DNA of 63,236 bases, counting the filler, from Dimorphilus gyrociliatus (lineage: Eukaryota > Animalia > Annelida): assembly GCA_904063045.1 (NCBI GenBank). It is 4 parts of 4 records of this genome, joined end to end, with 100 filler letters (N's around TTAATTAATTAA, not from the genome) between each part and the next. Parts side by side here need not be neighbours in the genome. Positions count along the whole stretch, not along the records: positions 9,450 to 28,230 come from CAJFCJ010000222.1; 3 more parts are not named here. One strand, 5' to 3'. A program made the translations under genes and the position numbers. Below the pieces are notes generated by a model. It was not told the origin of the DNA, did not search any database, and saw only the letters and a list, made by a program, of their open reading frames with translations. This document shows, piece after piece, positions 9,450 to 28,330 of this stretch (its first letter is position 1; the number at the start of each line of letters is the position of its first letter).

Positions 9450-9509
9450 TTTTCTTAATTAAAAAATTACTTAAATATAAAAAAATTAGAAACATTTTTT
9501 TTAACCAAG

Positions 9510-9996
9510 ATGAACAAAAACAATAGGATAGAAAATAGTAATAACATTAATAATATATCAATAGATGAAGAAAACAGCTCAATAGAAAATAATAATAATA
9601 AAAAAGAATATAAAAACTCAAAAATAGAAAAAAAAAGGAAGTTAAAAAATTTATAAAAAGTAAAGAAGATAAGAAAAGTAGAGAAAATGAAAAAAAGAGG
9701 TATAACCAAAGAAAGGCTATTCAAGATTTCTTAATTTCAGAAAATGGATTTAATTTAATTATAGATCAATCAAAAATAGCATCTGATAATTTAATAAAAG
9801 ATATTAAAAACAAATCTACTAATAAAAGTGATATACTAAATGACATAGACAAATTATTAGTTTCTACTCAGATTTTCTATTACAAATTCCTATAAAAAAG
9901 GTATATGAATCTGATTTATATGAAATAAGTAAAACAATAGAAAAAGTATGTGAAAGAAAAGAAGTTGTAGATAAATTCAAGTTTATATTTTATTAA
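9510..9996 (+). CDS. Possible Swi3/Csm3/TIPIN-like replication-fork protection protein (frameshifted in homopolymers), microsporidian
   Basis: Joined frames read FLISENGFNLII...DIDKLLVSTQIFYYKFPIKKVYESDLYEISKTIEKVCERKEV, similar in spacing to the Swi3 domain (LLSExG..L...DL..LL..YQ.W...FP.....D....IEK.G.K..V). By-eye match only. Confidence 0.4.
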
Positions 9997-10034
9997 AAAA
10001 TGTCTTGTTTAGTTTTTTTCAACTATTTTTAATT

Positions 10035-10205
10035 TTTAAAAAGTCAAACTTAAAATAAATTTAAATCTTTATAAATTTTTTTAAAAAATCAAACTAAAAT
10101 AAATTTTAGTTTTTATAAACTTTTTTAAAGTCAAATTCAAACTAATTCGTATTTTTATAAATTTTTTAAAAAGTCAAATTTATAGAATTTTGTATTAAAA
10201 AATCA
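10035..10205. repeat. Degenerate ~43-bp AT-rich tandem repeat (~4 copies)
   Basis: AA(G)TCAAA recurs near 10041, 10086, 10128 and 10171, each followed by ...TTTTATAAA.TTTTTT-like sequence. Confidence 0.55.
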
Positions 10206-10246
10206 AGTTTTTTTTTTCTTTAAAATCAAATTAAAAAAAATTTTTA

Positions 10247-11323
10247 ATGTTTATCTTAGGATTGGGTTTAATTAAGTCTACAAATAAATTAAATACTAAA
10301 GAACTACCTACTGATTTAATAAATATAGAACCAAGTAAATTTATAGAAAATAATATAAACTTTCAAAATTTAATAAAAGATTACGAAATTTCAGATTATT
10401 TAAGTATAGAACCTACTAATAGAGATAAATATTTCAATATTGATAATTATATAAGTGATATTAATAAAATTGATAGTAGTTTATATGTTAATCAATTAAA
10501 TATCAAATTTAATAAAAATGATATAAATAATGAACATTTAATACATTCTAATACAACTACTAATAATAGTAATAATAATTTCTTTTATCCGTTTGTATTC
10601 CCAGAAGAGTATATAAAAACAATATTAACATATGAATTAGAAAATAACATAAAAATAAAAAAAATTATAAACAAAGAAGAATTCATTAGAAGAATAGAAA
10701 AAGAATATGAAATTAGAAATAGATCAAATCTTTTAGAATCTTTTATTTTTAACTTTTTTTGTCACCTACCAAAGCTAAAGAATAATACTTATAACAATGA
10801 ATACAATACTTATAATACTAGTATTTCTAATATTTCTAGTATTTCTAATAATGAATATAATATTTGTATCACATGTAAAAATAAATTGAAGTTATTTTAT
10901 AAAAGACTAAAAATGAATTTATTTTATTTAAAAAATCAAAATAGTTTTGTATTTTTATGTTTAAACAAAGATTTAAAATATTCTAATTATTCGTTGAATT
11001 TAAAAAATAATAAAATAAATTTACTTAAGAATCGTATTTTAACCTATGATAAAAATAATAGAATAAAGGTGTTTTATGGATTAGATTGTATTTTTAGAAA
11101 TAAAAGTAAAAAAATTAATGTTATTAAAAATTTAGATAATAAATGGAATAAATTAATTAATAGCTCTACTAAAGATATACTAAACTATACTAATCAATAT
11201 AATAATATTGAAAATTTATTATTGATATTAAATTTTATTATAAAAGATATCTCTTATACTAAATTTAGCAATAGAAATAATTATTTTTATGAAGTTTCTA
11301 TAATAGAAGAATTTCTATTATAG
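10247..11323 (+). CDS. Hypothetical Asn/Ile-rich protein, intronless (microsporidian scaffold)
   Basis: 358-aa ORF in extremely AT-rich DNA where long ORFs are unlikely by chance; true start uncertain. Confidence 0.5.
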   Translation: MFILGLGLIKSTNKLNTKELPTDLINIEPSKFIENNINFQNLIKDYEISDYLSIEPTNRDKYFNIDNYISDINKIDSSLYVNQLNIKFNKNDINNEHLIHSNTTTNNSNNNFFYPFVFPEEYIKTILTYELENNIKIKKIINKEEFIRRIEKEYEIRNRSNLLESFIFNFFCHLPKLKNNTYNNEYNTYNTSISNISSISNNEYNICITCKNKLKLFYKRLKMNLFYLKNQNSFVFLCLNKDLKYSNYSLNLKNNKINLLKNRILTYDKNNRIKVFYGLDCIFRNKSKKINVIKNLDNKWNKLINSSTKDILNYTNQYNNIENLLLILNFIIKDISYTKFSNRNNYFYEVSIIEEFLL

Positions 11324-11454
11324 AAACTTCATAAAAATGCAAAATTTGAAAAAGAAAAAAGTTGACAGTTTTTATTCTGAATATAATTTTGAGATTTTAT
11401 TCAAATTAGAATTTAATACAGATTTTACTAATTCTGAAGTTATGGAAATAATTA

Positions 11455-11486
11455 NNNNNNNNNNNNNNNNNNNNNNNNNNNNNNNN
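11455..11486. other. Assembly gap (32 N)
   Basis: N run. Confidence 0.99.
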
Positions 11487-12368
11487 AAAGCATTTAATTA
11501 AACATCAACTTACATAAAAAACTCATCAACTAACTATCAAAGAAAATTTTCAGCAAACATCAACTAAAGCATCTGGGGATATATCCCACCTTACCTTTCC
11601 AGGCATTGGTTCTCGGAGGTCTAAAGTTTAACTCTCCTGATTAGAAAGGCTATAAGCCCTTCTCTTCAGGATAGCTTGAAGATACCTGGCTGTTGAGGCC
11701 AGGACCAAATAACACCGAGGACTATCGGCATCCCGCTCCCCTCCTAGGAGCACCCGACTGTGGTATCACGATCGAGGTTTTTGTTAAGTATTGAGGAGTA
11801 TATTTCTATACTCCTCCTATCCTCTTCGTATCCAGGACAATCAAGAAGTAGGTGATAGATATCTTCTCTACTCCTCTCTTGCACACTGGACACTTAGAGT
11901 AAAATTCACTGGATACCTTTCCTAGCATGACTAGGCGAGGTACAAAGTGGAATGCTCCTGCCCTCAACTTGAGGAGAGCATACCATCCAGCGCCTCTGTA
12001 CCTCAAGGATGCTCTGGGCACGTTCACATCAGCGACTCGCCACCTATCTCTCATCCTTGAGATAACGCTAGAGTGTCTAGCGATTTTCCTACTCTCCAGA
12101 CTCCGCTTGGCAATAGAAGGAGCTTGCCTTGCCTCACTGTCCAGTGCAGTAGGCGCATACCTTTTGAGCCATCGGGTTGTACGCGTCACCCATGTTGTTT
12201 TCTTTGCTTTTATAGGGTTCAATGAAGCTACTCATGTATGTACGTGAGTATCTCCACTTCCTATAGGCTCTGGTTCGCATCCTGGCAGCGAACACATCGA
12301 CCATCTTCATGCATAAGTCCTTATACATTGATAGTCTATTGAACATCTTGAGACATTCATTGCCATTG

Positions 12369-13256
12369 CTACTCCATTGTCCATGATCCTCTGTAGTTCT
12401 TCTGCATCGAGTGGAGTTCATACCAATCATTTCTACCACCATAGGTTACGATTGGCATGAGCACTCCTCTGAGGACCCGTACCTTGTGGTACATTCCAAT
12501 GGAGGGATTGCGCAAAGTGTTTGACACTGGGAGCAGTGCCAATCGACCCTGCTCCACTCTCCTGTCTAGATGAGCATCGTCACCCAGGTCATTGGATATC
12601 TGGATACCAAGGTAGGTATAGGACTGCACCATCGGAATCACTTGATTACCATAGTGTATGTCACCATCTACCAGTGGCTGGGACGCTCCTACTATCATGT
12701 AGCCACTCTTGGCGACATTGACACCCATCCCCCATTTGATACACCACTGTTGTAGTTTAATAAGGTTGAATGCCATATCCTCAGCGCTTTCTGCTAGCAG
12801 TACGGTGTCGTCGGCGAAGAGCAGTCCAGGTACTCTTTCAGCCAACCCATCTACCTCTACACCTCTCATTCCTGAGAAAATGTCATTAATATAGAGGTTG
12901 AATAGGAGGGGAGAGAGTGGGCAGCCTTGTCTCAACCCCACAGTATAGTCGAAGCTATCTGTCACGGAGTCCCCTATTCGTACTCTACACTGCACATTCC
13001 TGTACAGTCTCCTAACAAATGCGCGGTAGCATGCAGAGACTCCAATATCTGCCATCTTACCAAGCAGTTTATCGTGAGGCACCATGTCATAGGCTTTCTT
13101 AAAGTCTATGAATACTACAAAGGTGTCCTTACCTTTTATTTTTCTTCTCTTTAGAAGCTCTGTGAGTGTGGATGCTTGTGTTACGCATTCCTCGAGACTT
13201 CTGAATCCTGCCTGGTATCTACCTAGGAGATTATTCTCTTCCACCTCTTGTCTCAT
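12369..13256 (-). CDS. LINE ORF2 reverse transcriptase core (fragment)
   Basis: QAGFRSLEECVTQ, VVFIDFKKAYDMV, GLRQGCPLSPLLFNLYINDI, GLLFADDTVLL. Confidence 0.95.
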   Translation of the reverse strand: MRQEVEENNLLGRYQAGFRSLEECVTQASTLTELLKRRKIKGKDTFVVFIDFKKAYDMVPHDKLLGKMADIGVSACYRAFVRRLYRNVQCRVRIGDSVTDSFDYTVGLRQGCPLSPLLFNLYINDIFSGMRGVEVDGLAERVPGLLFADDTVLLAESAEDMAFNLIKLQQWCIKWGMGVNVAKSGYMIVGASQPLVDGDIHYGNQVIPMVQSYTYLGIQISNDLGDDAHLDRRVEQGRLALLPVSNTLRNPSIGMYHKVRVLRGVLMPIVTYGGRNDWYELHSMQKNYRGSWTME

Positions 13257-13934
13257 TTTTATTTCTACTATCTTAGTAGCAATCTTGAGCTGGGAAGAGA
13301 TTAAGGAGATCCCCTGTAGTTGGAGGGATTGCTCCTCTCTCCTTTCTTGAAGATAGGAACAATGATGCTCACATTGTCCCTAGAGGGAATGTCTTGGTTA
13401 ATCAGTTCATTCATCTGAGAAACCATTGCTTTAGCCATTAAGCTACTTCCCTCTCTATCACCCTCCAGGAGCTTGTAGAACTCTGATGGTATCTCGTCTG
13501 CTCCTGGCGCCTTGTTTCGCGGTGTTACTTTGGTTGCTAAACGTACTTCAGGCCATTTTACGGTGATAGATCCTTGTATTACTGGGATGTCTCTATATTG
13601 ACCTTGTGAGAGTGACTTGAAGTAGCTGTACCAGGAGTTTAGGATTTGCTCCTTGGTGACTGCTAGCTTATTAGTCTGTGGATCTCTGATAGCAGCATTA
13701 CTGACTGCACCTCTTACAGCTCCTCTGAGGGAGTTGATCCACCTCCACATGTCCCGAGACCTGTTGGCAGTCGTAAGGTCTATGCCTTTCTGGACATACC
13801 TATCCCAGTTTTTTTTCGACAGGCTAGTATGAGTTTTTTGGATCTAGTCCATAGTTCCTCATACTTAGCTTTGTCTTCTTCAGTGTTCAGTCCTGATGCT
13901 CTCAGCCTCCTTCGCTGGTCAATGCATCTGATTG

Positions 13935-15026
13935 TCACCTTGTCGAGGATAACTGACCTCTTCTCCTTTTGAAGTCAGAGAGGTTGAGGTTATTCAGCAT
14001 CCTCTTTGCAGTGGGCACCATCTCTGGTTCATCTGTCCAGTGCTTATGATGGATGATCCTTTCCCACTGCTGGGCCATTCTTTTCCTGCTTACTATACTC
14101 TTTGGCTGTTCAGCAGGTACTTGCCGCCCTGTGATCTTGATTAGAACTGGCTTATGATCAGACAGATCCCAGTTCTCGACCACTTGTTGACTAACAGGGC
14201 TTTCGCCTTTAGTCTGGACGAGGAAGTCTATCGGAAATCCTCGTCTGTTCCCGTCGACTCTCCATCGAGTCCTCCTCGTCATGGTGAGAATTTCAGGGGT
14301 AGCAAGGGGTATTTGCTCCGCTAATAACCGCTTCTGCACAGTCTCAGGCTTGGAGTTCCAGTCCCCTACAGTGACTACCTCATCAAACCGATCCTTGTGC
14401 TTCCTCAGCAACGCACCAAGTCTCTTGTATGCCTGCTTGCGGTTATCGAGTCCGTGAGGAATGTATACATTGATGCACAGTACCTTCTTAGGTCTTGTGT
14501 CAAGAGCAACTGCTATGAAATTGCTATCTACATGGATTAGGGTGGACTGGTTCCTAATCCGGTTCCTGACAGCAAGGAAGAGTCCTCGCTTGCCCAGATC
14601 ATCCTCTTTGTCTGAGGAGTATATGGTGTAGCCACCTACTTTAGGTGTTCTGCCTGCCCATAGAGTCTCCTGTATGGCTACAATGTCAGGCTTCTCGCGC
14701 GACAAGTATAGCCATATTTCAGACAATTTGGTTCGGAAGCCATTGATGTTATAGCTAAGGATCTTGAGAGTTTCAATCTCTTGCTTACAACATTGTATGG
14801 TCTTACTCCGACCCATGGTGGACTCTTTGATCCACCAATTCTCTCTTCTAGCTAAGGCCTTTAGCCTATCATTGCTACAAAGAGGCTGTTTGTTGACTAT
14901 TACATCTAGTCTTTGGCAACCATTTGGTTGCCTTATTCGCTTCACCTTGGCCTGCTTGAGGCCGAAGGTGTTTTCAAGCTTGGAGCTCACCAGGTCCCTT
15001 TGACCATGGGAGCTCCCCACAAACAA
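13935..15026 (-). CDS. LINE apurinic endonuclease-like domain preceded by an RRM-like segment
   Basis: LKILSYNINGFRTK, DIVAIQETLW, INVYIP, VGDWNS, IDFLV, SDHKPV are exo-endo-phos motifs. Confidence 0.9.
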   Translation of the reverse strand: MFVGSSHGQRDLVSSKLENTFGLKQAKVKRIRQPNGCQRLDVIVNKQPLCSNDRLKALARRENWWIKESTMGRSKTIQCCKQEIETLKILSYNINGFRTKLSEIWLYLSREKPDIVAIQETLWAGRTPKVGGYTIYSSDKEDDLGKRGLFLAVRNRIRNQSTLIHVDSNFIAVALDTRPKKVLCINVYIPHGLDNRKQAYKRLGALLRKHKDRFDEVVTVGDWNSKPETVQKRLLAEQIPLATPEILTMTRRTRWRVDGNRRGFPIDFLVQTKGESPVSQQVVENWDLSDHKPVLIKITGRQVPAEQPKSIVSRKRMAQQWERIIHHKHWTDEPEMVPTAKRMLNNLNLSDFKRRRGQLSSTR

Positions 15027-15087
15027 TACTTTCTTCCAGTCTCTAGGCTCTTATTCCCAGCCCCTGGTAAGCCAGGCTGGCGGCCAT

Positions 15088-16070
15088 TCATGATCGTCGG
15101 GCTGAGTCAACCTTCTCAGCCCGGTAAAAGAACCTTTCTGGGTTCTCTAGAACCCCTTCAGGGCTGGCCTTATCCAACACCCTGGAGAATGCTATGTTTG
15201 GGCCTCTTTGGCCCATCAAATAGACATTGTGGCTCCTCGCCCTTCGGAGCCACTCTTCGAGCTGGGCCCCTTTTGGGTGCCTCAGCATAACGAAGCCTTC
15301 ATTGACCAGAGCAGCATAAACCCTCTTTATTGTGAGGTTAGCTGCTCTGATCTCCAGCTTGTCCATCCATGTCCTCACCTGACAGGTCATGGATATTCTT
15401 ATTTTCTTTCTTTAGAATATCCATCACCTGTTCAGGTGAGGTAAAGACTGGTACCTGCAGATATGCATACTTCCAGTATGACTTCATATCTGAAGGCACC
15501 AGGCCCTTCTTTGTCATTTTTTTAGTATTCTTTGCACCTATTACTTTTTTACTTTGGTTTTTACTATTTTTTTTTATCTCTCTTTTTTTTATTTCCTATT
15601 TTTTTTACTTTTTTTTTTATTATTTTTTTTTCATTTTTTTTCATTTCTTTTTTTACGCTGCAATTTATTTTAGTATTTTTTTTTGTACTATTTTTCATGA
15701 GGAAGGAGTCTAGATCACTTATGAAGTCATCTAGACTCATTTCCTTCTTTATTTTTTTTATGGTTGTCCTAGAAGAGGAGGGACTTTTCCTCTTCATAGG
15801 TTTTATAGTCTTATGATTTTTTTCCTCATTTTTTTTATTATCAACATTTTTTACTTTGTTTTTTTTATTATAAATTTTTTTTTCTTTATTTTTTTTATTA
15901 TTAATAGTTTTTTTTTCCTTTTTTTTAATTTTATCCTGTTTTACTTTCAGGACCTCCAAAGCTTTCTGAAGGCGGCTAATGTTAAACATTAGCTCTTTTT
16001 CTCTCGTTTCATTGTACTTTTTTTTGTTTTTTAGTAAGATATTCTTCCTAGATTGGATTACCCCTTGCAT
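15088..16070 (-). CDS. Putative LINE ORF1: Lys-rich coiled-coil N-terminus plus a GC-richer C-terminal part (two frameshifts)
   Basis: MQGVIQSRK... (ATG 16070) joins through a single-base shift in the A-run near 15566 to MTKKGLVPSDMKSYWKYAYLQVP, then +1 near 15405 to the ORF at 15088-15390. Confidence 0.5.
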
Positions 16071-16099
16071 TGCATTACTCAAAAAATTTTTTTTTAAAA

Positions 16100-17205
16100 T
16101 AAAAGCATTTAATAAACACATAACCTACATAAAAACTCACCACTACTGCAAAAAAAAAAAAAAAAAAAAATAAACATACAATAAAAAACTCACCACTACT
16201 GCTAAGAAAAAGTTTCAGCTACACATCTACTAAAGCATCTGGGGATATATCCCACCTTACCTTCCAGGCATTGGTTCTCGGAGGTCTTGAGGAATGGCTA
16301 TTACCACTCCCCACAGTTTGCGGACAGGTCTGCTCCCTTCAGAGCTAGCACCCACCCATTCCACATACACCTTGCGGTGCCTGCAGCGCGACACCTGTGC
16401 ATCTCGAGTTACGGCAACAGCTGCACAGGCCACCGAGGACTATCGGCATCCCGTTCCCCTCCTAGGAACACCTCCATCCAGCTACCCGAAGACAGAGGTT
16501 TTTAGTTGTTGGTTTGACTCTTAGCTACTCATAATCACTGCTTACTGGACTTAGGTCTCTGCCAGTTATACTCAACATCTACACTTCAATCAGCTTGCCT
16601 ATCTTCATGGCAAGGAGCTTAATCATTGCATCTCCATTCCTAACTAGTTCTGGCGAGCGGGTCCAGCTAGGCCATCCAGATACCTCTTCTATTGCCAGAC
16701 TCCGCTATGATAACTGCCTCTACATGGTACTCCTGCCGACCACTTCTACTTTGTTTGCGGCGCTGACCTAGGCAGGGTCTGGGGCGTTCCTTTGCTTGGG
16801 CAATCCCCGGCCGTGGGTCGTGAGGACTTCGACCCAGTCGTGCAGATACCTTCCCATCCTGAGTGATCCTACCGTCCCTGTGTCAGGGGTGTCTACTCAT
16901 ACCCAACCACAGGCAGGCTCACTGACTTCCCTGTCTCTGCCCCATACACAAGCCTTCACTAAGCTCTTCAGCTCATCTGCCTTCGAGTCCCTGCATGGTA
17001 CTCTGCACACCCCACCTCACTACTAGTCACGCATCCTACTACGCTAGTTTTATAGTATCTTACCAAGGAGTATCCTCACAGTATGACTCAGACCCAGATA
17101 GATTGTGGGTATCTGGGGGTGCCTAGTATCCATGCTTGCACTGTCATTAGCCGTCTCCCGACGTTACCAAGACGAACCACGTGGAGGTTACAGTGCTGTC
17201 GTCTC
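16100..17205 (-). mobile_element. Non-autonomous (SINE/SIDE-like) element: 5' HDV-like ribozyme, ~650-nt non-coding body, 3' tail shared with the adjacent LINE
   Basis: Blocks 16431-16472 vs 11713-11754 (40/42 identical) and 16229-16287 vs 11563-11622 (one indel), plus a similar U-rich tail ending ...TTAAATGCTTT; no intact ORF. Confidence 0.7.
17138..17205 (-). ncRNA. HDV-like (CPEB3/R2-type) self-cleaving ribozyme
   Basis: P1 GAGACGA/UCGUCUU with G1.U wobble; P2 GCACUGU/ACAGUGC; P3 ACC/GGU; L3 UCCACGU; P1.1 CC/GG; P4 CGUC-GGGA-GACG; J4/2 GCUAAU containing the catalytic C (plus-strand position 17150). Confidence 0.88.
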
Positions 17206-17259
17206 CACCATGCGTTCATTTTATCTCTCTAGATAAGCTTTCAATTTCTACAATGTGTA

Positions 17260-17516
17260 GGATAGAACGACGGTAAGGACTGCGCCGTGCCTCAAATGCT
17301 CGCTTGCGCTCGCACCTTACAGCAGGCCGTCCATGTCGTGTCGTTTTCACGTCCGCCTTCCGACCTTGGGCCCGGTTTCTAGCTTAGAGGCTTTCAGCTA
17401 TACTCCGGTAGACGTAGCTCCGCGACATGCCCGTCCGGACAATCGCTCCACCAGTGGTCTCATAGGTCCTTCCTTTCGTACTACTCCCTACTCCCCGCAG
17501 TCGTCTGTAGGTAGGA

Positions 17517-17563
<47 letters not shown>

Positions 17564-18148
17564 ATTAGTGGGTGAACAATCCAACACTTCGGCGCTCCTG
17601 CACGCCGATGGTAGGAAGAGCCGACATCGAAGAATCAAAAAGCCGCGTCGCTTTCTGCGCTCGACGGCCACAAGCCAGTTATCCCTGCGGTAACTTTTCT
17701 GTCACCCACCTCACAACTGCGGTGTCAAGGTGGGATCCCTAGGCCTGGGTTTCCCCGCACGTACTCATCATCGTACGCTCAAGCACTCTCAAGCCCTTAT
17801 GCTCCACGCGGGTTTTCCCGTCCCGCTGCGAGTACCTTCGGTCAGCTGCGTTCTGCTCCTGCAGCTGTGCCGCCCCAGCCAAACAGTCCATCTAGCATCC
17901 ATCCCCAAGGGTGTGCCATGAGCTCCGACGCGTAGTGGTCTTTCACTTCCGCGTTGCCGCTCCCACCTCCCTACATCACGTCGCAGCTCACCGCTCTGCT
18001 ACACTACTGTGAAGCTCAACAGGGTCTTCTTTCCCCGCCTACATCGCCAAGCCCGTTCCCTTGGCACGTGGGTTCGCTAGTCTGCAGGTAGGGACAGTGG
18101 GAATCTCGTCTTTCCATTCATGCGCGTCACCAATTAAGTGACGAGGCG

Positions 18149-18187
<39 letters not shown>

Positions 18188-19898
18188 GACCCGCGCTTAA
18201 GAGAGTCTCCTCTCCTTCACGTAACGAGCACCGGGCAGAAATCACTTCGTATCCCTTCACGAAGCTATGTTTTTATTAAACAGTCAGATTCCCCATGCCA
18301 CCTTGAGTTCCATAAGAACCAACACTTCTCCCGAAGTTACGCATCCATTTTGCCGAATTCCCTTACCTGCGTTCAACATACGCCAGAGGCTTCTCACCTT
18401 GGAGACCTGTCGCGGTTTAAGTACGGTCCCGGGGCCCGCTCGCGCGTCCTTTTCACTGCTGGGCCCGGCGGCCGCAGGGTCGCCCCTTGCCAGCGGCCCG
18501 CGCCCTTCGCTGACTGACTCATCTCCACGCGCGCGCCGCACGCACCAGAGCCGGATGCTCTGCGCGGCCGGACGGCCCATGTCGAACGCCCGATCTCCCG
18601 TCGCCGCTCGGCCCCGAGGGATAGGACTCTTAACCTATTTCTCTTTCGCTACAGACCGTGCTCCGTCGCTTAGCACCGCCTCACTCCCTTCTGATCTACA
18701 TCGCCAGGGAAAACCTTCTCCTCCTCGGCCTTCGCCATTCTCAGACGAATTACAACTACTGCCACCAAGATAAGCGCTGCCGGCACCTCCACCGCACCTC
18801 GCAGTGCGCCTTCCACAGTCCCGGCACGCCCCCCTACCCGCGGGCGCGCATCGGTCGACGCGTCAGCACCGTCAATTTTAGGGCCAGCTGAATTCCGTAG
18901 GTACGTTGTAACACGTTTCTTACCGGCTGCCGACTTTCATGGCCACCGCCCTACCGTCTTCATTCACCTACCGCCTTCCCTCTCTGCCACGCCGTTCGGT
19001 ACCTTATCGCGCCGCCAGGTTGAATCCTCTTCGCCAGTCCTGCTTACCAAAACAAGCCCACTACGCTCGTCCAAGTCCGCGCTGCGTATGCCACGCCGCG
19101 CTGAGCACGTTCGGAGTTCGTTCGTCGCCTTAAGGCTAAATGATCCTAGTTCTACCGCACTCCTCTTCCACTCGCGCGCTGTCCTGAGAGACATTTCGGG
19201 GGGAACCAGCTACCAGACTGTTCGATTGGTCTTTCGCCCCTACACCCAGTTGACGTCAAAGAGTTGCATATCATTACGACTCGCCACCTCCAGCGCATTT
19301 TCATCCGCCTTCGTAGCCACCAGGCATAGTTCACCAGTCTATCGGGTCTTAACCACGCCTCTCCACCGCTCTCGCGCGCGTCCGGGGCTCTCTCCCTTCC
19401 ACTCGCTGCGTAGTTAAACTCCTTGGTCCGTGTTTCAAGACGGGACCGACTCTGTCGGCTCCACATGCAATTTCACTTTTTCATCATATTCTGTCTTCGG
19501 TCACCCTACTAATACGCTATCGGTGTCCACCTGTATTTAGCCTTAGATGCGCACTGCCACCTCTTCACGCTGCACTACCGAGCAACGCTACTCACTTCCT
19601 AGCGCGGCGTCCCTACGGGGCTAACACCCTCTCAGGCCGGCCCTTCAAGGCTCGCTCGGGCCGCCGCTTCGCTGACATCTCGCCGGGGCGATTACACCGT
19701 CGGGCTCCTTCCTCTTCGCTCGCCGCTACTGGGGAAATCCTCGTTAGTTTCTTCTCCTCCCTTTACTCATATGCTTAAATCAGAGGGGTTCTCGTCACTA
19801 CTGACCATTCAGGCACGCGCCGTCCTCGCTGCCGCTCCGGCCTCGCTTCCTGCCGCGCCCTTCCTCGCCAGTGGACCCAAACGATCCCTTGCATGTGG
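17260..19898 (-). rRNA. Microsporidian LSU rRNA with the 5.8S-equivalent fused at the 5' end (~2.6 kb)
   Basis: Conserved LSU motifs on the minus strand (GATTTAAGCATAT, TGACTCTCTTAAGGTAGCCAAA, GCTGGGTTTAGACCGTCGTGAGACAGGTTAG). 5' start ACATGCAAGGGATCGTTTGG with no ITS2. Both ends approximate. Confidence 0.95.
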
Positions 19899-19919
19899 CT
19901 CTTCTATCTCCATTCCTCG
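19899..19919 (-). other. Very short single ITS (~20 nt)
   Basis: Lies between the SSU 3' end (..GTTGGATCA) and the LSU 5' motif. Confidence 0.7.
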
Positions 19920-21269
19920 CTGATCCAACGACAGGTTCTCCTACCGTTGCCTTGTTACGACTTGTATCAGATCTAGAACCCTGCGCTCACTCACTCGTTG
20001 TTCGTTCGCACCTGATTCCATCTTCGATAGCGACGGGCGGTGTGTACAAAGAACAGGGACTCATTCATCGCTCCATACTGAGACAGCGATTACTAGCAAT
20101 TCCTCGTTCCTGCGCCCCTTCCAGGGCACATTCCCTCTCGATCGCATTTCTCTCTCCTTCCTTCCTCCTGCGACCACTGTAGTGCGCGTGCAGCCCAGTC
20201 CATCTAAGGGCATCACTGACCTGTTCTTGACCCCTCCTTCCTGCGCTTGGCGCGCCAGTCACTCCGGTCGAGGGTCTCACTAATTACCAGACTTAACCCA
20301 AGGATCACTCCATTTGTCGTTAACGGCCATGCACCACTTTCCGACCTATCGCGTACCACGCTCATCCGGTCGTCGGCACTGGTAAGCTGTCCCGCGTTGA
20401 GTCAAATTAAGCCGCACACTCCACTCCTTGTGGTGTTCTTCCGTCAATTTCCTTTAAATTTATCGCTTGCGCGCGTACTCTCCCCGTAGCTCTACTCTAG
20501 ATTTCTCGTCCCCGTCACACTCGTAACAGGGCGTAAGCATCGTTAACTGCTGGAACTACTACGGTATCTAATCGTATTCGATACTCCAGCCTACGTCCTT
20601 GATCATCGGACTCGCCCCTGGCCAGCGCTTTCGCCTCAGTTTCTCCTAGGCAGGTCATCGAATTTCACCTCTAGCTGCCTAATAGACTGGCCCCTGGCCG
20701 CTCCTCATCCTCTACCGTTCTGGGACATTCCACCCCTTGATCGGATGTTTTATACACCAGTTGGCTAGGCAGACTACGGACCTTTTAATCGCAGCAAAAA
20801 TCATAGACACCCCTGGAGCTGGTATTACCGCGGATGCTGGCACCAGACTTGACCTCCAGTTACTAGCATCTTGTTTACAAATCCTTCTAAACAAACGTTT
20901 CTTCACTACCGCCCTGCTTGCAGGCTTCGGTAAGTTTCGTGCCTGCTGCCGTCCTTGGACCTGGTAGCCGTCTCTCAGGCTCCCTCTCCGGAATCAAACC
21001 CTAATTCCCCGTACCCGTATTCGTCTAAATAGGCCTTTACCCTACTTACTAACTGATGGGCTGACTTCTTACTCTCCGCCGCTCCGCTATACCTGTAGCC
21101 CACTGGCTACACGCCTTGCGTATTCCCCTCAGTTTCCCGAGGTTGTCCGCCCGCGCAGATCAAATCAAAGTCCGTTACTGAGCCGTACGCCGCTCCCCCG
21201 AAGGTTCGCTTACACATGCATGGCTAAATCTGTGAAACTAGCGTCCACGTCAGACAGAATCAATCTGAT
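19920..21269 (-). rRNA. Microsporidian SSU (16S-sized, ~1350 nt) rRNA
   Basis: 5' ATCAGATTGATTCTGTCTGACGTGG; GTGCCAGCATCCGCGGTAATACC; AAACTGTCCC-region motifs and 3' AAGTCGTAACAAGG...GGATCA; reduced length typical of Microsporidia. Confidence 0.96.
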
Positions 21270-21781
21270 TCTCTTCGTAGTTTACACTACACTCTCCGCA
21301 CTCCGAGCTCCTCACCTTTCACCAAGGCCGTCCCGCTCACTACACCTATTACCTTCACTTTTACTGCATATTCGTCAATTTAGTATGACACTCGAAAGAG
21401 TTTTTGAAAAGTACTTTTTTCCTCCTCATTATAGGCGAATTTTTTAGTTACATCTGTCTGCGATTCACTACGAGTCATCCCAAATTTCCGAATCCGAGTT
21501 TTCGGGTATGAGGTCAGCACCACTACTGATCAGAACACTCTATATACGCACGATCTAAAAGCTGTCACAAAATTGACAGCATTTTTTGACACAATATGAC
21601 ACATATCGCGCACAAAATAATACACATATGTAGGTAGTGTATAGTAGATGTTGTGTCGGTTGTGTATTTACATTTGTGTAATATGAGGTGGTATACTTAG
21701 GTAGATACGTTTTAAAACATAAAAATTTTCAAGCAAGTAGGGGTTAGAATAATTTTAAAAAATCACAGAATATATCATGTA

Positions 21782-23263
21782 CAGTAGGGGAAAAAAAATG
21801 AAAAAAAAATAATTAATGAAAAGTCGTATTTTACGATGTAATTAAAGCAATGTTTATATTATGTTTTCATTTATATATGGATAAGCTATTCAAATTATTT
21901 TTCTCTTGGTTCTAGTATTGTTTTTTAATCAAAACATCATAAAAATATCAACGAATTGCTCCTGATGGGGAAAAAAAATGAAAAATTTTAAATTAATAAG
22001 AAATATGGTGTCCTTTATTTCTAATACATTCTATTATTCTTTTATTCATTGAAAGACATAGATTTTTGCACAAATCACTGCTTATATTATTCCAAAGCTC
22101 CATAATTTTTGACTTTAATTCATCGCCAGTAGAGAAGGATAAACCTCTTAATTTGTACTTGAGAATAGACCAAAGGTTTTCAATAGGATTCAAATCAGGA
22201 GACTGAGAGGGCCAATCTAACACATCAATATCGTTTGTCCTAAAATACTCCTTTGTCAGTCGACTTGTGTGTTTTGGATCATTATCCTGTTGAAATTTTA
22301 ACCTGTTTACACCTAGTTTTTCTTTTATAAAGGTAAATTAGTAGCTAGTATATGTACGTACTGTACTGCATCCATTATTCCATCAACAAAATGTAACCTT
22401 CCTACACCTTCATAGCTAAATGATCCCCAAACCATCAATTTCTTAAATCCAAATTTTTTAGTAAAGTTTAGAGGTGTCTTATCAGAGCTTTCTTTCCATA
22501 CTTTGAACCGACCAGAGTCATTATAGTAAGAAAATGATGTTTCATCGCTAAAAAAACATCATTCCAGTAATTTTGACCAAGAAACAACCACTTTTTGTTA
22601 CCTCCAATCTTCTCTTTATATGAATGGGTTTGAGAAAAGGTTTTTTTACTGGGATAACAGCTTTAAACCCATTTTTATTTAAAAAGTTTCTTATTGTTCT
22701 GGGATTCACAGCCAAACCTGTATTATTTTCTATATTTCTAGCTATTTTAGGACTAGAAATCAAACTATCATTTTTGATCAAAGACTTAATCATTGATAAA
22801 TGCTTTGATTTAAGAACTTTGGGCCTGCCAGAACCAAGTTTTCTATCAGTATTATTATGCTGTTGAAATTTAGTGACTATTCTACTGATAGTCGATACAC
22901 TAACACCTGTTTTTATCAAAATTTCTTTATAAGTAAACCCCTCATTTCTTAGTGTAAGAACCTGACCCTTGACTACAGAAGAATAGTGATGTTTCATAAG
23001 GTCATATATACGAAGTTTTTTCATATGATTATGGAGGGAAATTTGACTTTTTTTAAATTTTTCATTTTTTTTCCCATCAGGAGCAATTCGTTGATATTTT
23101 TATGATGTTTTGATTAAAAAACAATACTAGAACAAGGAGAAAAATTTATTTGAATAGCTTATCCATATATAAATGAAAACATAATATAAATATGCTTTAA
23201 TTACATCGTAAAATATGACTTTTCATTCAATTATTTTTTTTTCATTTTTTTTTTCCCCTACTG
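21782..23263 (-). mobile_element. Tc1-family DNA transposon (DD34E) with ~210-bp TIRs and TA TSD; frameshifted transposase
   Basis: TA|CAGTAGGGGAAAA ... TTTTCCCCTACTG|TA. The transposase has RKLGSGRPK, FSDETSF, FQQDNDPKHT and WPSQSPDLNPIENLW, with 34 residues between the second D and E. Confidence 0.93.
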
Positions 23264-23337
23264 TATGTAATTTTTTTGTTTAATTGTAAATTATTATCAA
23301 AATCATTAGAAAATTAATTTATGGAGTTCAAAAGTTT

Positions 23338-23830
23338 GTGATAGCTTTCGATTCGAATATTTATAGACCTTCTACAACCAATTTAGAAAAAACTGTTCTG
23401 GGAGCGCTAGCATATCACATGGAACAATCTTCTAAAGATATTGGTGGAGTTGATGAAAATAAAGAAAGTAAATTTGTTGAGATGGATGAAAGTCTCGTTT
23501 CTAAAAGAAAACATAATAGAGATAGACTACTAGAATAGAGGTGGTATATTGGTGATATAGAACGCGATAATAATTATATTTTTGTAGTATAATTTTATGA
23601 TAGAAGAAGCCGGATTATGAAAAATATAATATTACAAAATATTCTTTCAGGTATAAGAGTGATAACAGACAAATGAAGAGCATATAGTAGCCCCTATCCT
23701 AAAAAAGTAATTAATAGGATTATGATAGTATTAATCGTAATAGATAATTCGTAAGTCCAAAAGACCCTGTAGTCCATACCAAAAATATAAAACCTCTATG
23801 GAGTGTGACTAAAAGATATATAAGAAGGTA
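23338..23830 (+). mobile_element. Decayed Merlin/IS1595 (ISXO2-like) transposase
   Basis: FVEMDESLVSKRKHNRDR, VITDK*RAY, DPVVHTKNIKPLWSVTKR are the D, D and (E) motif positions of Merlin; multiple stops. Confidence 0.75.
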
Positions 23831-24283
23831 AACCAATCGTAAAGACCTGTAATTCTTTTATTTACTGCAACCTTTATATTTAAAAAGTTCGAAAGGTTTA
23901 AACGATTACGAAGTATTTATTGTATTTTCAGGTAGTGAATATGAGAATGATTTATTTAAGATAAGTTAATAAAACCAGTTTATAAATACTTTTGAAAAAT
24001 TTTAACCCTACGCTATTCTTTACGTGAACCATGTTATTTATTTATTATATATAGGTATATCTTTATATTCAATTTATTTTCATTATATCATTAATTAACT
24101 TTTTTTTACTTTTATTTAAAGATATATTTATATTATTATCTATAGATATATTTTATTTGTTTCTATTAATAAAATATTATAAAGTGATGTTAAAAAAAAT
24201 GTGCCACTAAAATTTAATTATCAGTATGTCTTCCTTTAACCTTATATATAGCCAACGTTTTTTTAAAAAAGCTTATTATATTT

Positions 24284-26125
24284 TGTTGTAGCATAAAGTG
24301 TCCGGGTTGCAAAAAGTGTCCGGCCTTAAATAGCATTTATTTATAAAAATAAAGTGATTTGTAAACTTTTTTATTTTTTTTTCAATTATAAATTTACTAA
24401 AAAGAGTAAGAGCTTCGTGACAAAAAGTGTCCTGGTAATTTAATAGAGGTCTCCTTTAATAAATTAATAGGAAAAAATGGATAAGTGTCAATGGCTGACA
24501 AAAAGTGTCCGGGGTATTTTTTTAGAGATTTTATCAACATTATAAGGTAAATTTAATAGATATTATGATTTTAATTAAAAATATAGTTTTTCTGAATTTT
24601 TTAGATAATTTTCTTCACACAGCGTATTGAAGTTTGTTTTGTCTCTTCAGAGTTTTGACTTTTAATAATGATTCTTTCACCATTTATTTCTTCAACTACA
24701 TAAATATCATCAAAATAAAGTGACTCAAGGGCCCTTCTTCTTATAGTTGGGCTATATGGCTTAACCAGTAACACTCTATCCCCTATTCTTATTTGCTGAG
24801 ATGATCTAATGGAAAATTCTCTGCGATATGTTTCTACATAGTTTAATAAACTTAATCTTGCTTCATCAGAGAAAGTTGTTGTATTCATATTATTCAACAG
24901 CTCGTTATCGAATCCTTTAAATAACAGAAATAGTTTGATTCCTGTGCTTCTATGAGCTGTATTATTGTAATAATATACAATCCTATCAATATGATTATGC
25001 CAATCAAATTGGTTAAAGCCAAAAGATTTTCTTATTCTCGATTTAATTGTACGATTAAAACGCTCAACTTGCCCTTGTGATTGGGGATGATATGGTCTGC
25101 CATGTGTAGAAATTACATTAAATCTGGTTAAAATACTCTCTACTCTATTGTTTCTGAATTCACCTCCATTATCACTATGAAAATTTCTCACGTTCCTTCT
25201 TTATAAAAATGTTGTTCTAGAATAGCAGAAAAGTCTCTGAGTTCTTATTATTAGCCGTGTAAACCCATCCAAATTTAGTAAAACTATTAATCATTGTGAA
25301 AACGTATTTCAATCCATTGTTATCTTGGGAATATATACTGAGGTCAATAGTATCAACTATCAACCTTTCCCTTGGGTATGATGGTATTATAGGTGTAATA
25401 GATTCAACAAAAGCTGGAGGCGTCTCCCTTAAACAATTTTCACATCTTTCTAAAAGACTATTAACATCATTTATGGTAATCCCCACATATCTTTGTCTTA
25501 CTCTATTAAACACAACTCTTCCCCGGGCATGATCAACGTTATGCTTCTCCATTATTATTTCTTTTCTTTTATTTATTTCTGATCTTAGAATTATGTCTTT
25601 CTCTATCCTATCATCAACCATCTTCAATAGTCCATTTCTTAACACTAGGTTTTTTACACTTTCTACGTAACACTCTCTTTTGGGAATCGTCAAAGGTCAT
25701 AGGATATGTTTTATTAGATAGATAAATAATTATATTATTTTTTTCTTCATCGTTCTCAATTAGTAAATTTGTAGACATGGGATACTTTATAAGTAAATTT
25801 TTATCTAAAAAATTAAGAAAAACTATATTTTTAATTAAAATCATAATATCTATTAAATTTACCTTATAATGTTGATAAAATCTCTAAAAAAATACCCCGG
25901 ACACTTTTTGTCAGCCATTGACACTTATCCATTTTTTCCTATTAATTTATTAAAGGAGACCTCTATTAAATTACCAGGACACTTTTTGTCACGAAGCTCT
26001 TACTCTTTTTAGTAAATTTATAATTGAAAAAAAAATAAAAAAGTTTACAAATCACTTTATTTTTATAAATAAATGCTATTTAAGGCCGGACACTTTTTGC
26101 AACCCGGACACTTTTTGTTGCAACA
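24284..26125 (-). mobile_element. Ginger2/TDD-like DNA transposon with gypsy-type integrase, ~320-bp TIRs, TGT...ACA ends and 5-bp TSD (TATTT)
   Basis: The left and right arms are near-perfect reverse complements with internal AAAAAGTGTCC(G)G repeats. Flanks are TATTT at 24279-24283 and 26126-26130. ORFs give HHCC (HNVDH...CENC), LIVDTIDL, HSDNGGEF and HPQSQGQVERFN (DD35E). No RT or RNaseH. Confidence 0.85.
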
Positions 26126-26229
26126 TATTTGATTGCAACATCTCCAGGGTAATGGAATTTCACATTTTAACTGTTTCTTCTATTAACCACGTTTTCTTAA
26201 GCTTCCTTTTTTTTCAAACAACGCTTTAT

Positions 26230-26945
26230 GTACGTACACTCATATATGCTCTATCGGATTTAAATCAGGACATTCCAGTGTCTTTAGTATTCTCTTCAGC
26301 TAACCACTGGCTTACAAGCTTAGATATATACTTTAAATCATTATCATGTGAAAATAAACTGATTAGCCCCATTCAGATACGAAGGAACGAGGATATTGAG
26401 CTAAAACTTCTATATGCTGATCAGGTCATCATGTCCTCTATATGATATTGTATCCTATACCATAACGTTTCTACCACCATATTTAACTGTGGGAACAATA
26501 TTCTCTGTACGACGTCTTCCACCTTTATAATACGTAACATATTTTGCTCCATTATTATTAAAAAGGTTAAATTTAACTTCATCTGAAAAGCAATAGTCTA
26601 TAAAGTTTCATTAGACATGCCTAAAAAGTTCTCTGATGACTCGATTCTTTTTCCTATATTTTTTGGTTTTAATAAAGGCTTTTTTATACTATATAAATTA
26701 TTAACACAATGCTTTTTAGTGTCATTGATACAATTGATCTTGATATTATGATATTTAACACATTACTTACCTCTTTTGTAACTTATAGTGATATTACAAA
26801 TAGATTTTCTTGATGCTTTCGTATAATAATGCCTAAAATATAATACACAATTCGGGAAATCTTCCAGAGTCATATTTTCGGTTATAGGAGACCCAGTTCG
26901 ATATAATTTTGCTTTTTTTGTACCGTATATCTCCCGATTTTTCAT
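26230..26945 (-). mobile_element. Heavily decayed Tc1 transposase
   Basis: FSDEVKFNLF...PTVKYGGRNVMV and HDNDLKY motifs across shifting frames. Confidence 0.65.
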
Positions 26946-27667
26946 TTAACAAATGAAATTGCATATCATTCTATTCCTTAAACATTCAGTTGTCAGGGAG
27001 TTTTCTATATTAATGAGATGTTTAGACATAGAGCAAGAAAAATTCTACTATATAAGTCAAAATGGAAGGAAATTTACAAAAGGTCCATTTTTCCGAATAC
27101 TAGTTATTTTCAATTTAAGTAAAACTAAACGAAAAAAAAATTAAAAAGAAACACTTATGTATATAAGTGCCTATTTATTATTAGATAACTCAACCATAAG
27201 ACTTCATTTTTAAAACAGTCTAACATGTCTTATATTTATAAAAAAGGGGACTATTTTTTTAAGAACACTACTGGTATACAATTCTATTAATATTTAATTT
27301 ATTCTATTTAAAAAAAATCTTTTTATAATTCGATGATATTAAAGGAAGTTTTTATTTCTTTTTTATAATTTTTCTATAAAATTTATTTTAAATAGAAGTT
27401 TTTATTTCTTTTTTATAATTTTTATAAAAATTATAATAAATTATAACTTTTTAAAGTTTTTTGAATTTTTAAATTTTTGTAATTTTTTTTTATTATTTAA
27501 AACAAGAAATAAACACAACCAATAAAACTTTAAACACATTTGTAATTTTAAAAAAGAACTTAACAAATGAAATTTTAAAGGTTCCAAACATATTTATAAT
27601 TTTATTTGTCAATGCATTGATAAATCACTTATGTTTATAAATAAATTAAAACCCATAACTCTTTATA

Positions 27668-28230
27668 ATGAAGTCTAAACAAGAAGAGAGTAGTGATACC
27701 AACAAGAATTATAGTTTATTTGAACAAAACAATATAATAGATTCTATTTCTTCAGAATGTTCAGAAAATTTGAAAAACAAAACTTTTTTTAAGAAAATAA
27801 AAAATAAAATTTTTAACAAAAAGAAAACGCATAAACAACAAGAATCTGTATTTTTAGGTGGTGTTGAAACATCAACTTTTTCAGATAATGGAAGTGCTTA
27901 TGATAATGATAGTTTATATGATGGTTGTTGTAGTGATTCTATTAAATCTAATAGTTCTGAAGAAACTGATGACTCTTTAATACATTTGAAAAATAGTAAT
28001 ATTTTTACTGAGAATTTTAATTTAAATACGGCAATGCAACTACCCACCGAAGAAGAGGTTTGGATTGGATTGACAGAATTTTGTAGAAGAAGATTTAGTG
28101 TTTATTTTATAAATGACAATACAAAGATAAAATTACTAAAATTGGCAAATTTTAAACTCAAAGAAGTAAAAATATCTCATGGTATTGAATTGTTTTTCTT
28201 TAAATTAAGAATATTTTTTATAGGAGAAAA
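27668..28230 (+). CDS. Hypothetical microsporidian protein (5' part, truncated by the spacer)
   Basis: Open frame of ~187 codons, Ser/Asp/Asn-rich N-terminus; CCC motif ~15 nt upstream of the ATG, as commonly seen at microsporidian starts. Confidence 0.55.
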
Positions 28231-28330
28231 NNNNNNNNNNNNNNNNNNNNNNNNNNNNNNNNNNNNNNNNNNNNTTAATTAATTAANNNNNNNNNNNNNN
28301 NNNNNNNNNNNNNNNNNNNNNNNNNNNNNN
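28231..28330. other. Artificial scaffold-joining spacer
   Basis: 44N-TTAATTAATTAA-44N. Confidence 0.97.

Follow-up and report, generated by a model that had tools for sequence, protein, structure and literature searches.

R2-type retroelements gain transcription by RNA polymerase I (Pol I) at the cost of destroying the rRNA gene that hosts them. R2 of Drosophila and the short internally deleted elements (SIDEs) that accompany it, including R2/R1 hybrid SIDEs, are residents of ribosomal DNA (rDNA), like the elements described here, and are co-transcribed with rRNA (PMC3414825, PMC3774820). For Microsporidia, a review of transposable elements in rDNA lists only miniature inverted-repeat transposable elements inside the rDNA of Nosema, and our full-text searches of the literature turned up no ribozyme-bearing or rDNA-linked long interspersed nuclear element (LINE) described from this group. 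We analysed a stretch of 63,236 nt (the window) assembled from four parts of the genome assembly of the annelid Dimorphilus gyrociliatus (GCA_904063045.1), in which a LINE of the apurinic endonuclease (APE) type and a non-coding, ribozyme-headed, non-autonomous partner (NA) stand head to tail behind a microsporidian rRNA gene unit. With moderate confidence, we interpret them as a LINE family and its partner living in the 3′ flank of the rDNA, which would use read-through transcription from the rRNA promoter, release by a ribozyme, recognition of a shared 3′ end by reverse transcriptase (RT) and reinsertion beside the family's own tails.

Window positions 9450-28286 are contig C222 of the 77.9-Mb assembly. 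The same assembly holds a second rDNA, an ordinary eukaryotic 18S-5.8S-28S tandem with a repeat of ~9.1 kb and ~34% G+C on Mb-sized contigs (C5:626-650 kb, C164 and C223), which identifies the microsporidian contigs as those of a cobiont inside the host assembly. This cobiont part is probably incomplete, and the sequencing runs that contain this stretch are mostly marine. Microsporidian rDNA occurs in three places, on contigs C222, C184 and C137, with units that are mutually 99.6-99.9% identical, and each of the three (3/3) is followed by NA and then by the LINE on the same strand. Base composition on C222 changes with the layout (flanks, 15-32% G+C; rDNA, ~55%; 11487-17205, ~45-52%), and the parts, all on the minus strand, are as follows.

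21271-21781, minus strand: 5′ external transcribed spacer (5′ ETS) and probably the promoter of the rDNA unit; identity between C222 and C184 is 99.5% as far as 511 nt upstream of the small-subunit (SSU) rRNA, past which they are unrelated
19918-21270, minus strand: microsporidian SSU rRNA (Rfam RF02542, SSU_rRNA_microsporidia, 1178 bits, full model)
17267-19811, minus strand: large-subunit (LSU) rRNA of the reduced microsporidian type (Rfam RF02543, 1493 bits)
17206-17266, minus strand: 3′ spacer of 61 nt from the LSU end to the predicted ribozyme cleavage site; also in C184, with the first 43 nt kept in C137
17138-17205, minus strand: ribozyme of 68 nt resembling that of hepatitis delta virus (HDV), as judged by sub-threshold Rfam matches, its fold and element copies starting at G17205
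16087-17205, minus strand: NA, a non-coding non-autonomous retroelement of 1119 nt with a partly duplicated tail and an A9 end at 16087
16431-16472, minus strand: 42-nt block in the 3′ untranslated region (UTR) of NA that is common to the LINE (family D6, 95% identical)
16081-16086, minus strand: T-run (T6) between the NA A-tail and the LINE start; junction read directly, with the same A-run/T-run joint at nearly every array boundary
11487-16080, minus strand: APE-type LINE with APE and RT domains, its 3′ end cut by an N gap
11455-11486, no strand: N gap at the LINE 3′ end, in which the last LINE bases are lost; a paralogous locus on contig C181 bridges it

An earlier, sequence-only reading of this stretch had put the rDNA, the ribozyme, a 1.1-kb element and the LINE in this order on the minus strand, which Rfam, Pfam and reading of the sequence confirm. 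Its layout of the elements was right, but their borders had to be moved by ~15 nt (NA end at 16087, T6 at 16086-16081, LINE start at 16080). Likewise, the proposed start codon of LINE open reading frame 1 (ORF1) at 16070 and the lack of a LINE ribozyme (Rfam) both stood, but the NA A-run and the T-run precede the ATG by 17 and 11 nt, respectively, where ~30 nt had been estimated. The R2 site in the LSU (18162-18149), suggested to be empty, is uninterrupted when the sequence is read directly, and the array begins 62 nt past the LSU, in agreement with the proposal that the rRNA gene is left undamaged. The ribozyme assigned to the head of the non-autonomous element also held up, with all HDV helices able to form and copies starting at G17205.

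Every HDV helix (P1, P1.1, P2, P3 and P4) can form in 17205-17138 as a nested double pseudoknot, with cleavage predicted 5′ of G17205, 62 nt past the LSU.

17205-17199 with 17175-17169, minus strand: predicted P1, 7 bp, with G.U at the first nucleotide
17196-17190 with 17144-17138, minus strand: predicted P2, 7 bp
17188-17186 with 17178-17176, minus strand: predicted P3, 3 bp, with a 7-nt loop
17168-17167 with 17184-17183, minus strand: predicted P1.1, 2 bp
17163-17160 with 17155-17152, minus strand: predicted P4, 4 bp, with a GGGA loop
17150, minus strand: candidate catalytic C, in a J4/2 strand reading GCUAAUG

Using a structural descriptor for the HDV fold that demands P1, P1.1, P2, P3 and a C-N-A-A motif in J4/2, we obtained four hits on both strands of 266 kb of real sequence, all of which are NA 5′ ends. 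The descriptor matched 8 sites per 3 Mb of composition-matched simulated sequence (~2.7 per Mb), and ~0.03 hits are expected by chance in the array, with far fewer at any one specified nucleotide. Searching with a covariance model of the ribozyme copies, we detected six copies in the 78-Mb assembly, all behind microsporidian rDNA. No other ribozyme family in Rfam matched at E values up to 10, the LINE start gave no ribozyme, and neither a ribozyme 24-mer nor a 22-mer across the LSU-spacer junction had a match in scans of metagenome contigs.

The borders of the NA copies point to the same nucleotide. There are four full or near-full copies in the assembly, and NA copies start at the predicted cleavage nucleotide after four different sequences: the 61-nt spacer, a filler on C137, NA position 162 and NA position 247. 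One copy, on C184, is 5′-truncated by 7 nt. R2 shows this pattern, its 5′ end being set when the ribozyme cleaves the co-transcript (PMC3774820). Precise starts beside four different upstream sequences are the strongest indirect support that sequence comparison gives for a working ribozyme motif, and we regard 17205-17138 as a credible HDV-like ribozyme placed exactly at the 5′ end of NA, with self-cleavage predicted.

NA itself has no sense ORF above 58 amino acids (aa). What it has in common with the LINE is only the 42-nt block (95% identical) and about 125 nt of tail; the LINE shows no similarity to NA positions 1-730 and no ribozyme match. NA is therefore not a simple internal-deletion derivative of the LINE, given that the LINE lacks both a ribozyme and any 5′ sequence in common with it. 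Rather, NA combines a ribozyme 5′ end with a 3′ end common to an autonomous LINE, as SIDE-type elements do. Folding of the two 3′ UTRs yields one common set of hairpins, in which the base differences compensate each other. In the hairpin of the 42-nt block, GUUCC/GGAAC in NA is replaced by GCUCC/GGAGC in the LINE, a double change from T-A to C-G, and the tail hairpins read ACC..UGCCU/AGGUA..GGU in the LINE type and GUCG..GCCC/GGGU..UGGC in the NA type. Mosaic tails also occur, as the C222 NA carries a LINE-type hairpin and the third NA of C184 (NA3) a LINE-type end. Such a shared 3′ structure is consistent with recognition by the RT of the LINE, as happens in stringent LINE-SINE pairs (SINE, short interspersed nuclear element).

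The units of the arrays end alike, with the tail, an A-run of 6-9 and a T-run of 4-12, and the next unit is often only a 5′-truncated tail of 60-130 nt. The next units abut the A-run/T-run ends of tails, and new copies are thus added beside existing tails. On C137, a 43-nt spacer is followed by a piece of ~18 nt matching NA about 270-287, then by NA 1-162, a full NA and the LINE. The proximal part of the C184 array consists of the 61-nt spacer, a decayed NA 1-134, 16 nt of AT filler, NA from position 7 and an N gap; its distal part consists of the LINE from about position 619, NA 149-247, the full NA3 and three truncated tails. A further tail piece of 127 nt lies 2.2 kb beyond this array. C181 holds the 3′ half of the LINE, preceded by an N gap, and downstream of the LINE its flank matches that of C222 (94% over 2 kb). 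Where C222 has its gap, C181 reads through a tail, an A-run, a T-run and another tail copy of 60 nt into this AT-rich flank. Copies are thus present in four loci, three of which abut rDNA and the fourth of which (C181) has the N gap upstream. Sequence after the last array element is unrelated among C222/C181, C137 and C184, with no common target at the 3′ junction, and the only recurrent joint in the arrays is an A-run followed by a T-run.

Low-complexity hits aside, NA and LINE tail fragments occur nowhere in the 78-Mb assembly other than C222, C137, C184 and C181. We conclude from these sequence comparisons that the family is, as far as assembled, confined to the rDNA 3′ flank and its own tails. 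The expectation that other copies would sit at the same junction was borne out, with the array behind 3/3 microsporidian rDNA units and none elsewhere in the assembly, and head-to-tail tandem growth finds support in junctions that place units beside existing tails. Two further points of the sequence-only reading were not supported. The LINE itself had been taken to target the 3′ external spacer, yet the downstream flanks differ at each locus and new pieces lie beside tails even distal to the LINE. Whether the array leads to a telomere beyond the gap at 11455 had been put forward as a question; we found no repeats of the TTAGG or TTAGGG type, and sequence extends for 18-65 kb beyond the arrays.

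Some features of the surrounding sequence are recorded here in their own right. The AT-rich flank at 9450-11454 is 94% identical to C181:65724-67864, a paralogous or homeologous segment, and contains an ORF of 358 aa (10247-11323) without a Pfam match. Just past the C137 array (C137:21090-21150, minus strand), the flank opens with a short G+C-rich inverted repeat (GGGATGCGAAGTTATCGCACCC ... GGGTGCGATAA) that may be the end of another mobile element. The rDNA units are dispersed as single units; on the upstream side they share an abrupt edge that lies 511 nt from the SSU (window 21781, which is C222 12332; C184 32359), and their flanks are unrelated. Upstream of the C222 unit are a Tc1/mariner transposase fragment (22548-23024, minus strand; HTH_Tnp_Tc3_2, E 1.1e-14) and integrase remnants (24601-25693, minus strand; rve_3 and Integrase_H2C2), which place the unit in a transposon-rich neighbourhood. 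We considered retro-copying of whole rDNA units, from the 5′ ETS through the LINE tail, out of read-through RNA, and did not adopt it: by eye, the two edges at hand, those of C222 and C184, showed no target-site duplication when the start of the unit was set against the end of its array.

The LINE comprises the following parts.

15564-16070, minus strand: ORF1, 168 aa, lysine-rich and of low complexity, 24% G+C
14154-14759, minus strand: APE endonuclease domain of ORF2 (PF03372 Exo_endo_phos, E 1.2e-14, residues 90-291 of the piece 15026-13935)
12597-13244, minus strand: RT domain of ORF2 (PF00078 RVT_1, E 1.5e-29, C-terminal two thirds of the profile)
11487-11754, minus strand: 3′ UTR, with the 42-nt block at 11713-11754 and tail hairpins at 11500-11622 (families D3, D6 and D8)

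The APE domain lies N-terminal to the RT, unlike in the R2 clade, which has a C-terminal restriction-like endonuclease and no APE. The nearest proteins are only 30-38% identical and come from Smittium, brown algae, Amphiamblys and Nucleospora, with uninformative names, and the best solved relatives of the RT are L1 ORF2p and R2, alike in score (E about 1e-12). Seven contigs with six related LINE proteins contained no HDV-like ribozyme and no LSU or SSU. On a contig carrying one relative (30% identity; GCA_024449815.1), a complete 5S rRNA gene lies 317 nt downstream of the LINE ORF on the same strand (L045:4789-4906), a single case that may be due to chance. Away from rDNA, C228:24508-25834 (L042:5172-6498) holds an old, 5′-truncated, AT-shifted relative with 43-60% amino-acid identity over the RT and C terminus.

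ORF1 matches no Pfam family and is open only in the C222 copy. Its region (15450-16070) has 24% G+C, like the genome of the microsporidian host, and the rest of the LINE ~47%. An almost perfect hairpin with ~28 bp in its stem (15370-15444, minus strand) lies in the interval that separates ORF1 from the first piece of ORF2; it recurs in the C184 copy and gives a sub-threshold match to mir-392 (37 bits, E 9.6e-5, threshold 62). ORF2 on C222 is broken into six or more pieces that lie in different frames, a point that the sequence-only reading had not noted. Indels in the LINE are enriched in homopolymers (45% versus 17% background), and part of the frame damage could therefore be assembly error.

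Divergence differs between the two elements. LINE copies are 2.5-5.0% apart, with 15-22 indel events per 3.7 kb (the C137, C184 and C181 copies are 95-97.5% identical), and NA bodies are 1.0-2.3% apart. When the same loci were compared, NA bodies differed by 1.0-2.3% versus 3.6-4.2% for the LINE (Fisher p 1e-5 to 1e-3), and on C184 the young NA3 is found beyond the older LINE as seen from the rDNA. The addition or replacement of NA therefore postdates the divergence of the LINE copies, which argues against simple inheritance of one frozen block. A conversion gradient spreading from the rDNA was also considered as the cause of low NA divergence and was not seen: along the LINE, divergence neither clearly rises nor clearly falls away from the rDNA. 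Overall, the LINE copies in the assembly look decayed and the NA copies younger.

Four marine metatranscriptome runs hold 24-29% of the sampled sequence words of 16000-17400, although such runs can hold DNA. LSU makes up only ~10% of this interval, suggesting that part of NA is present in RNA-derived contigs. In the cycle that we propose, transcription from the rRNA promoter would continue past the LSU end into the array. Ribozyme cleavage 62 nt after the LSU, predicted here, would then give the NA RNA the exact 5′ end at which copies are seen to start. The compensatory changes and mosaic tails suggest that the LINE RT recognises the shared 3′ hairpins and tail. Target-primed reverse transcription would take place at A-run/T-run joints beside existing tails and lead to the head-to-tail pile-up visible in the junctions. 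Finally, the messy 5′ joints with extra short NA pieces may reflect template jumps or non-homologous joining.

Several observations weigh against this cycle. The Rfam scores of the ribozyme stay well below threshold (RF02682, 25.9 bits, E 0.11, threshold 44; RF00094, 24.7 bits, threshold 50), both matching HDV models being narrow ones. The four full ribozyme copies are 100% identical, so there is no covariation to support the helices, and two of the C184 ribozymes are degraded, with 1-nt deletions in P3 of the rDNA-proximal copy and no P1 in the next. Frames are broken in all four LINE copies as assembled, leaving no visible source of RT. The NA-to-LINE joint is identical on C222 and C137 and could have been inherited rather than made twice, and the whole comparison draws on only three rDNA loci from an incompletely assembled cobiont.

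The identical joint belongs to an account in which one old insertion of LINE and NA beside an rDNA unit was followed by copying of unit and array as DNA, so that position would reflect descent, not targeting or dependence on rRNA transcription. The rDNA-NA-LINE order is the same in three loci, the array is collinear with 94% identity over 5.8 kb, and the rDNA units have their sharp common upstream edge; duplication at the DNA level does occur, given that C222 and C181 have the LINE and 2 kb of flank in common. Copying of one block would not readily give NA bodies significantly less diverged than the LINE at the same loci, with no clear trend with distance. The spacer joints also differ (61 nt on C222 and C184; 43 nt and filler on C137), additional copies of NA have their first nucleotide precisely at the cleavage site, each locus has its own stack of truncated tails, and at every locus the shared block stops right at an element tail, past which the flanks are unrelated. 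We judge descent by block duplication unlikely as the explanation of the arrays. Chimeric joining of repeats in a low-coverage cobiont could in principle produce rDNA/NA/LINE joints, and N gaps do lie at the C222 LINE 3′ end (11455-11486), in the 5′ part of the C184 LINE and on C181. However, three separate contigs have the same order with locus-specific differences and unique flanks, and C181 sequence bridges the C222 gap, which makes an assembly artefact barely conceivable.

Occupation of 3/3 rDNA units within 18 nt of one point, the absence of dispersed copies and the fact that the spacer is followed first by the younger NA and only then by the older LINE, as though the latest arrivals enter next to the spacer, are what one would expect of a strictly site-specific LINE whose endonuclease recognises and nicks the rDNA 3′ spacer, as R1 and R2 do in 28S, with every element having entered there. 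Such an enzyme would not account for the lack of a common target sequence after the last array element, nor for NA3 and several truncated tails of C184, which were added distal to the LINE, at tails, or for the 127-nt piece 2.2 kb beyond that array. The old related LINE on C228 lies away from rDNA, and the seven contigs with six related proteins show no LSU or SSU neighbour. Spacer targeting of this kind is, in our view, quite improbable. The constant place of the ribozyme could instead mean that it serves the host, in 3′-end release of the rRNA precursor or Pol I termination, and that the array is kept for it; a copy lies 44-62 nt from the LSU end in all three units and is 100% identical between C222 and C137. 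Yet the C184 unit, with P3 deletions in its proximal ribozyme and no P1 in the next, has rRNA that is 99.9% identical, and the ribozyme is conserved no better than the rest of the NA body. Co-option by the host is thus highly improbable.

Our reading of a LINE family and partner that live on rRNA read-through can be extended, more tentatively and with somewhat less than even confidence, to an undescribed lineage of rDNA-dependent retroelements in Microsporidia. In it, an APE LINE and a ribozyme-headed partner would occupy the 3′ flank of every rRNA unit, be expressed only as ribozyme-freed Pol I read-through RNA and reinsert only beside their own tails, as a convergent, non-destructive counterpart of R2 and SIDEs. 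If this is true, then within the literature searched no ribozyme-bearing retroelement and no LINE/SINE pair with an rDNA niche would have been described from Microsporidia before, and both HDV-like ribozymes and rDNA-linked retroelements would be extended to this group. An element just past the LSU that cuts itself free would obtain the same expression as R2 at no cost to the host. The locus would then also provide a test, set up by nature, of the interplay of read-through, ribozyme processing and tail recognition in a strongly reduced eukaryote.

Head-to-tail non-LTR (long terminal repeat) elements, as in the arrays described here, likewise form the telomeric GilM/GilT arrays of Giardia. In the HeT-A/TART telomeric arrays of Drosophila, too, head-to-tail non-LTR units abut the preceding tail (PMC5537684). 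By analogy, an upstream tail that promotes the next unit could suit a LINE whose ATG lies 11 nt from its start. The present arrays differ from HeT-A/TART in having no telomere repeats, 18-65 kb of ordinary sequence beyond them, anchoring at rDNA and a ribozyme. L1Tc and NARTc of Trypanosoma cruzi both carry a ribozyme and an internal promoter and are dispersed, whereas here the ribozyme is found only in the partner and all copies lie behind rDNA (PMC3383444). In stringent LINE-SINE pairs, the non-coding partner likewise has the 3′ hairpins and tail of the LINE (PMC5786205), and the hairpin is kept here by compensatory changes. Unlike in those pairs, the head of NA is a ribozyme rather than a small-RNA gene transcribed by RNA polymerase III, and the copies are not dispersed.

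The closest likeness is to R2 and SIDEs, in which an HDV-like ribozyme placed at nucleotide 1 defines the 5′ end, the partner consists of a ribozyme head and a 3′ end recognised by the RT of the autonomous element, and 5′ joints are variable. The R2/R1 hybrid SIDE borrows the tail of an APE-type LINE (PMC3414825). By contrast, the autonomous element here has an APE instead of the restriction-like endonuclease of R2, and, in a departure from SIDEs, it lacks a ribozyme and has no 5′ sequence in common with its partner. Head-to-tail arrays and a microsporidian host further set this family apart from R2 and SIDEs. Whereas R2 inserts within the rRNA gene, insertion here is outside the rRNA, 62 nt past the LSU, and thus no rRNA gene is inactivated.

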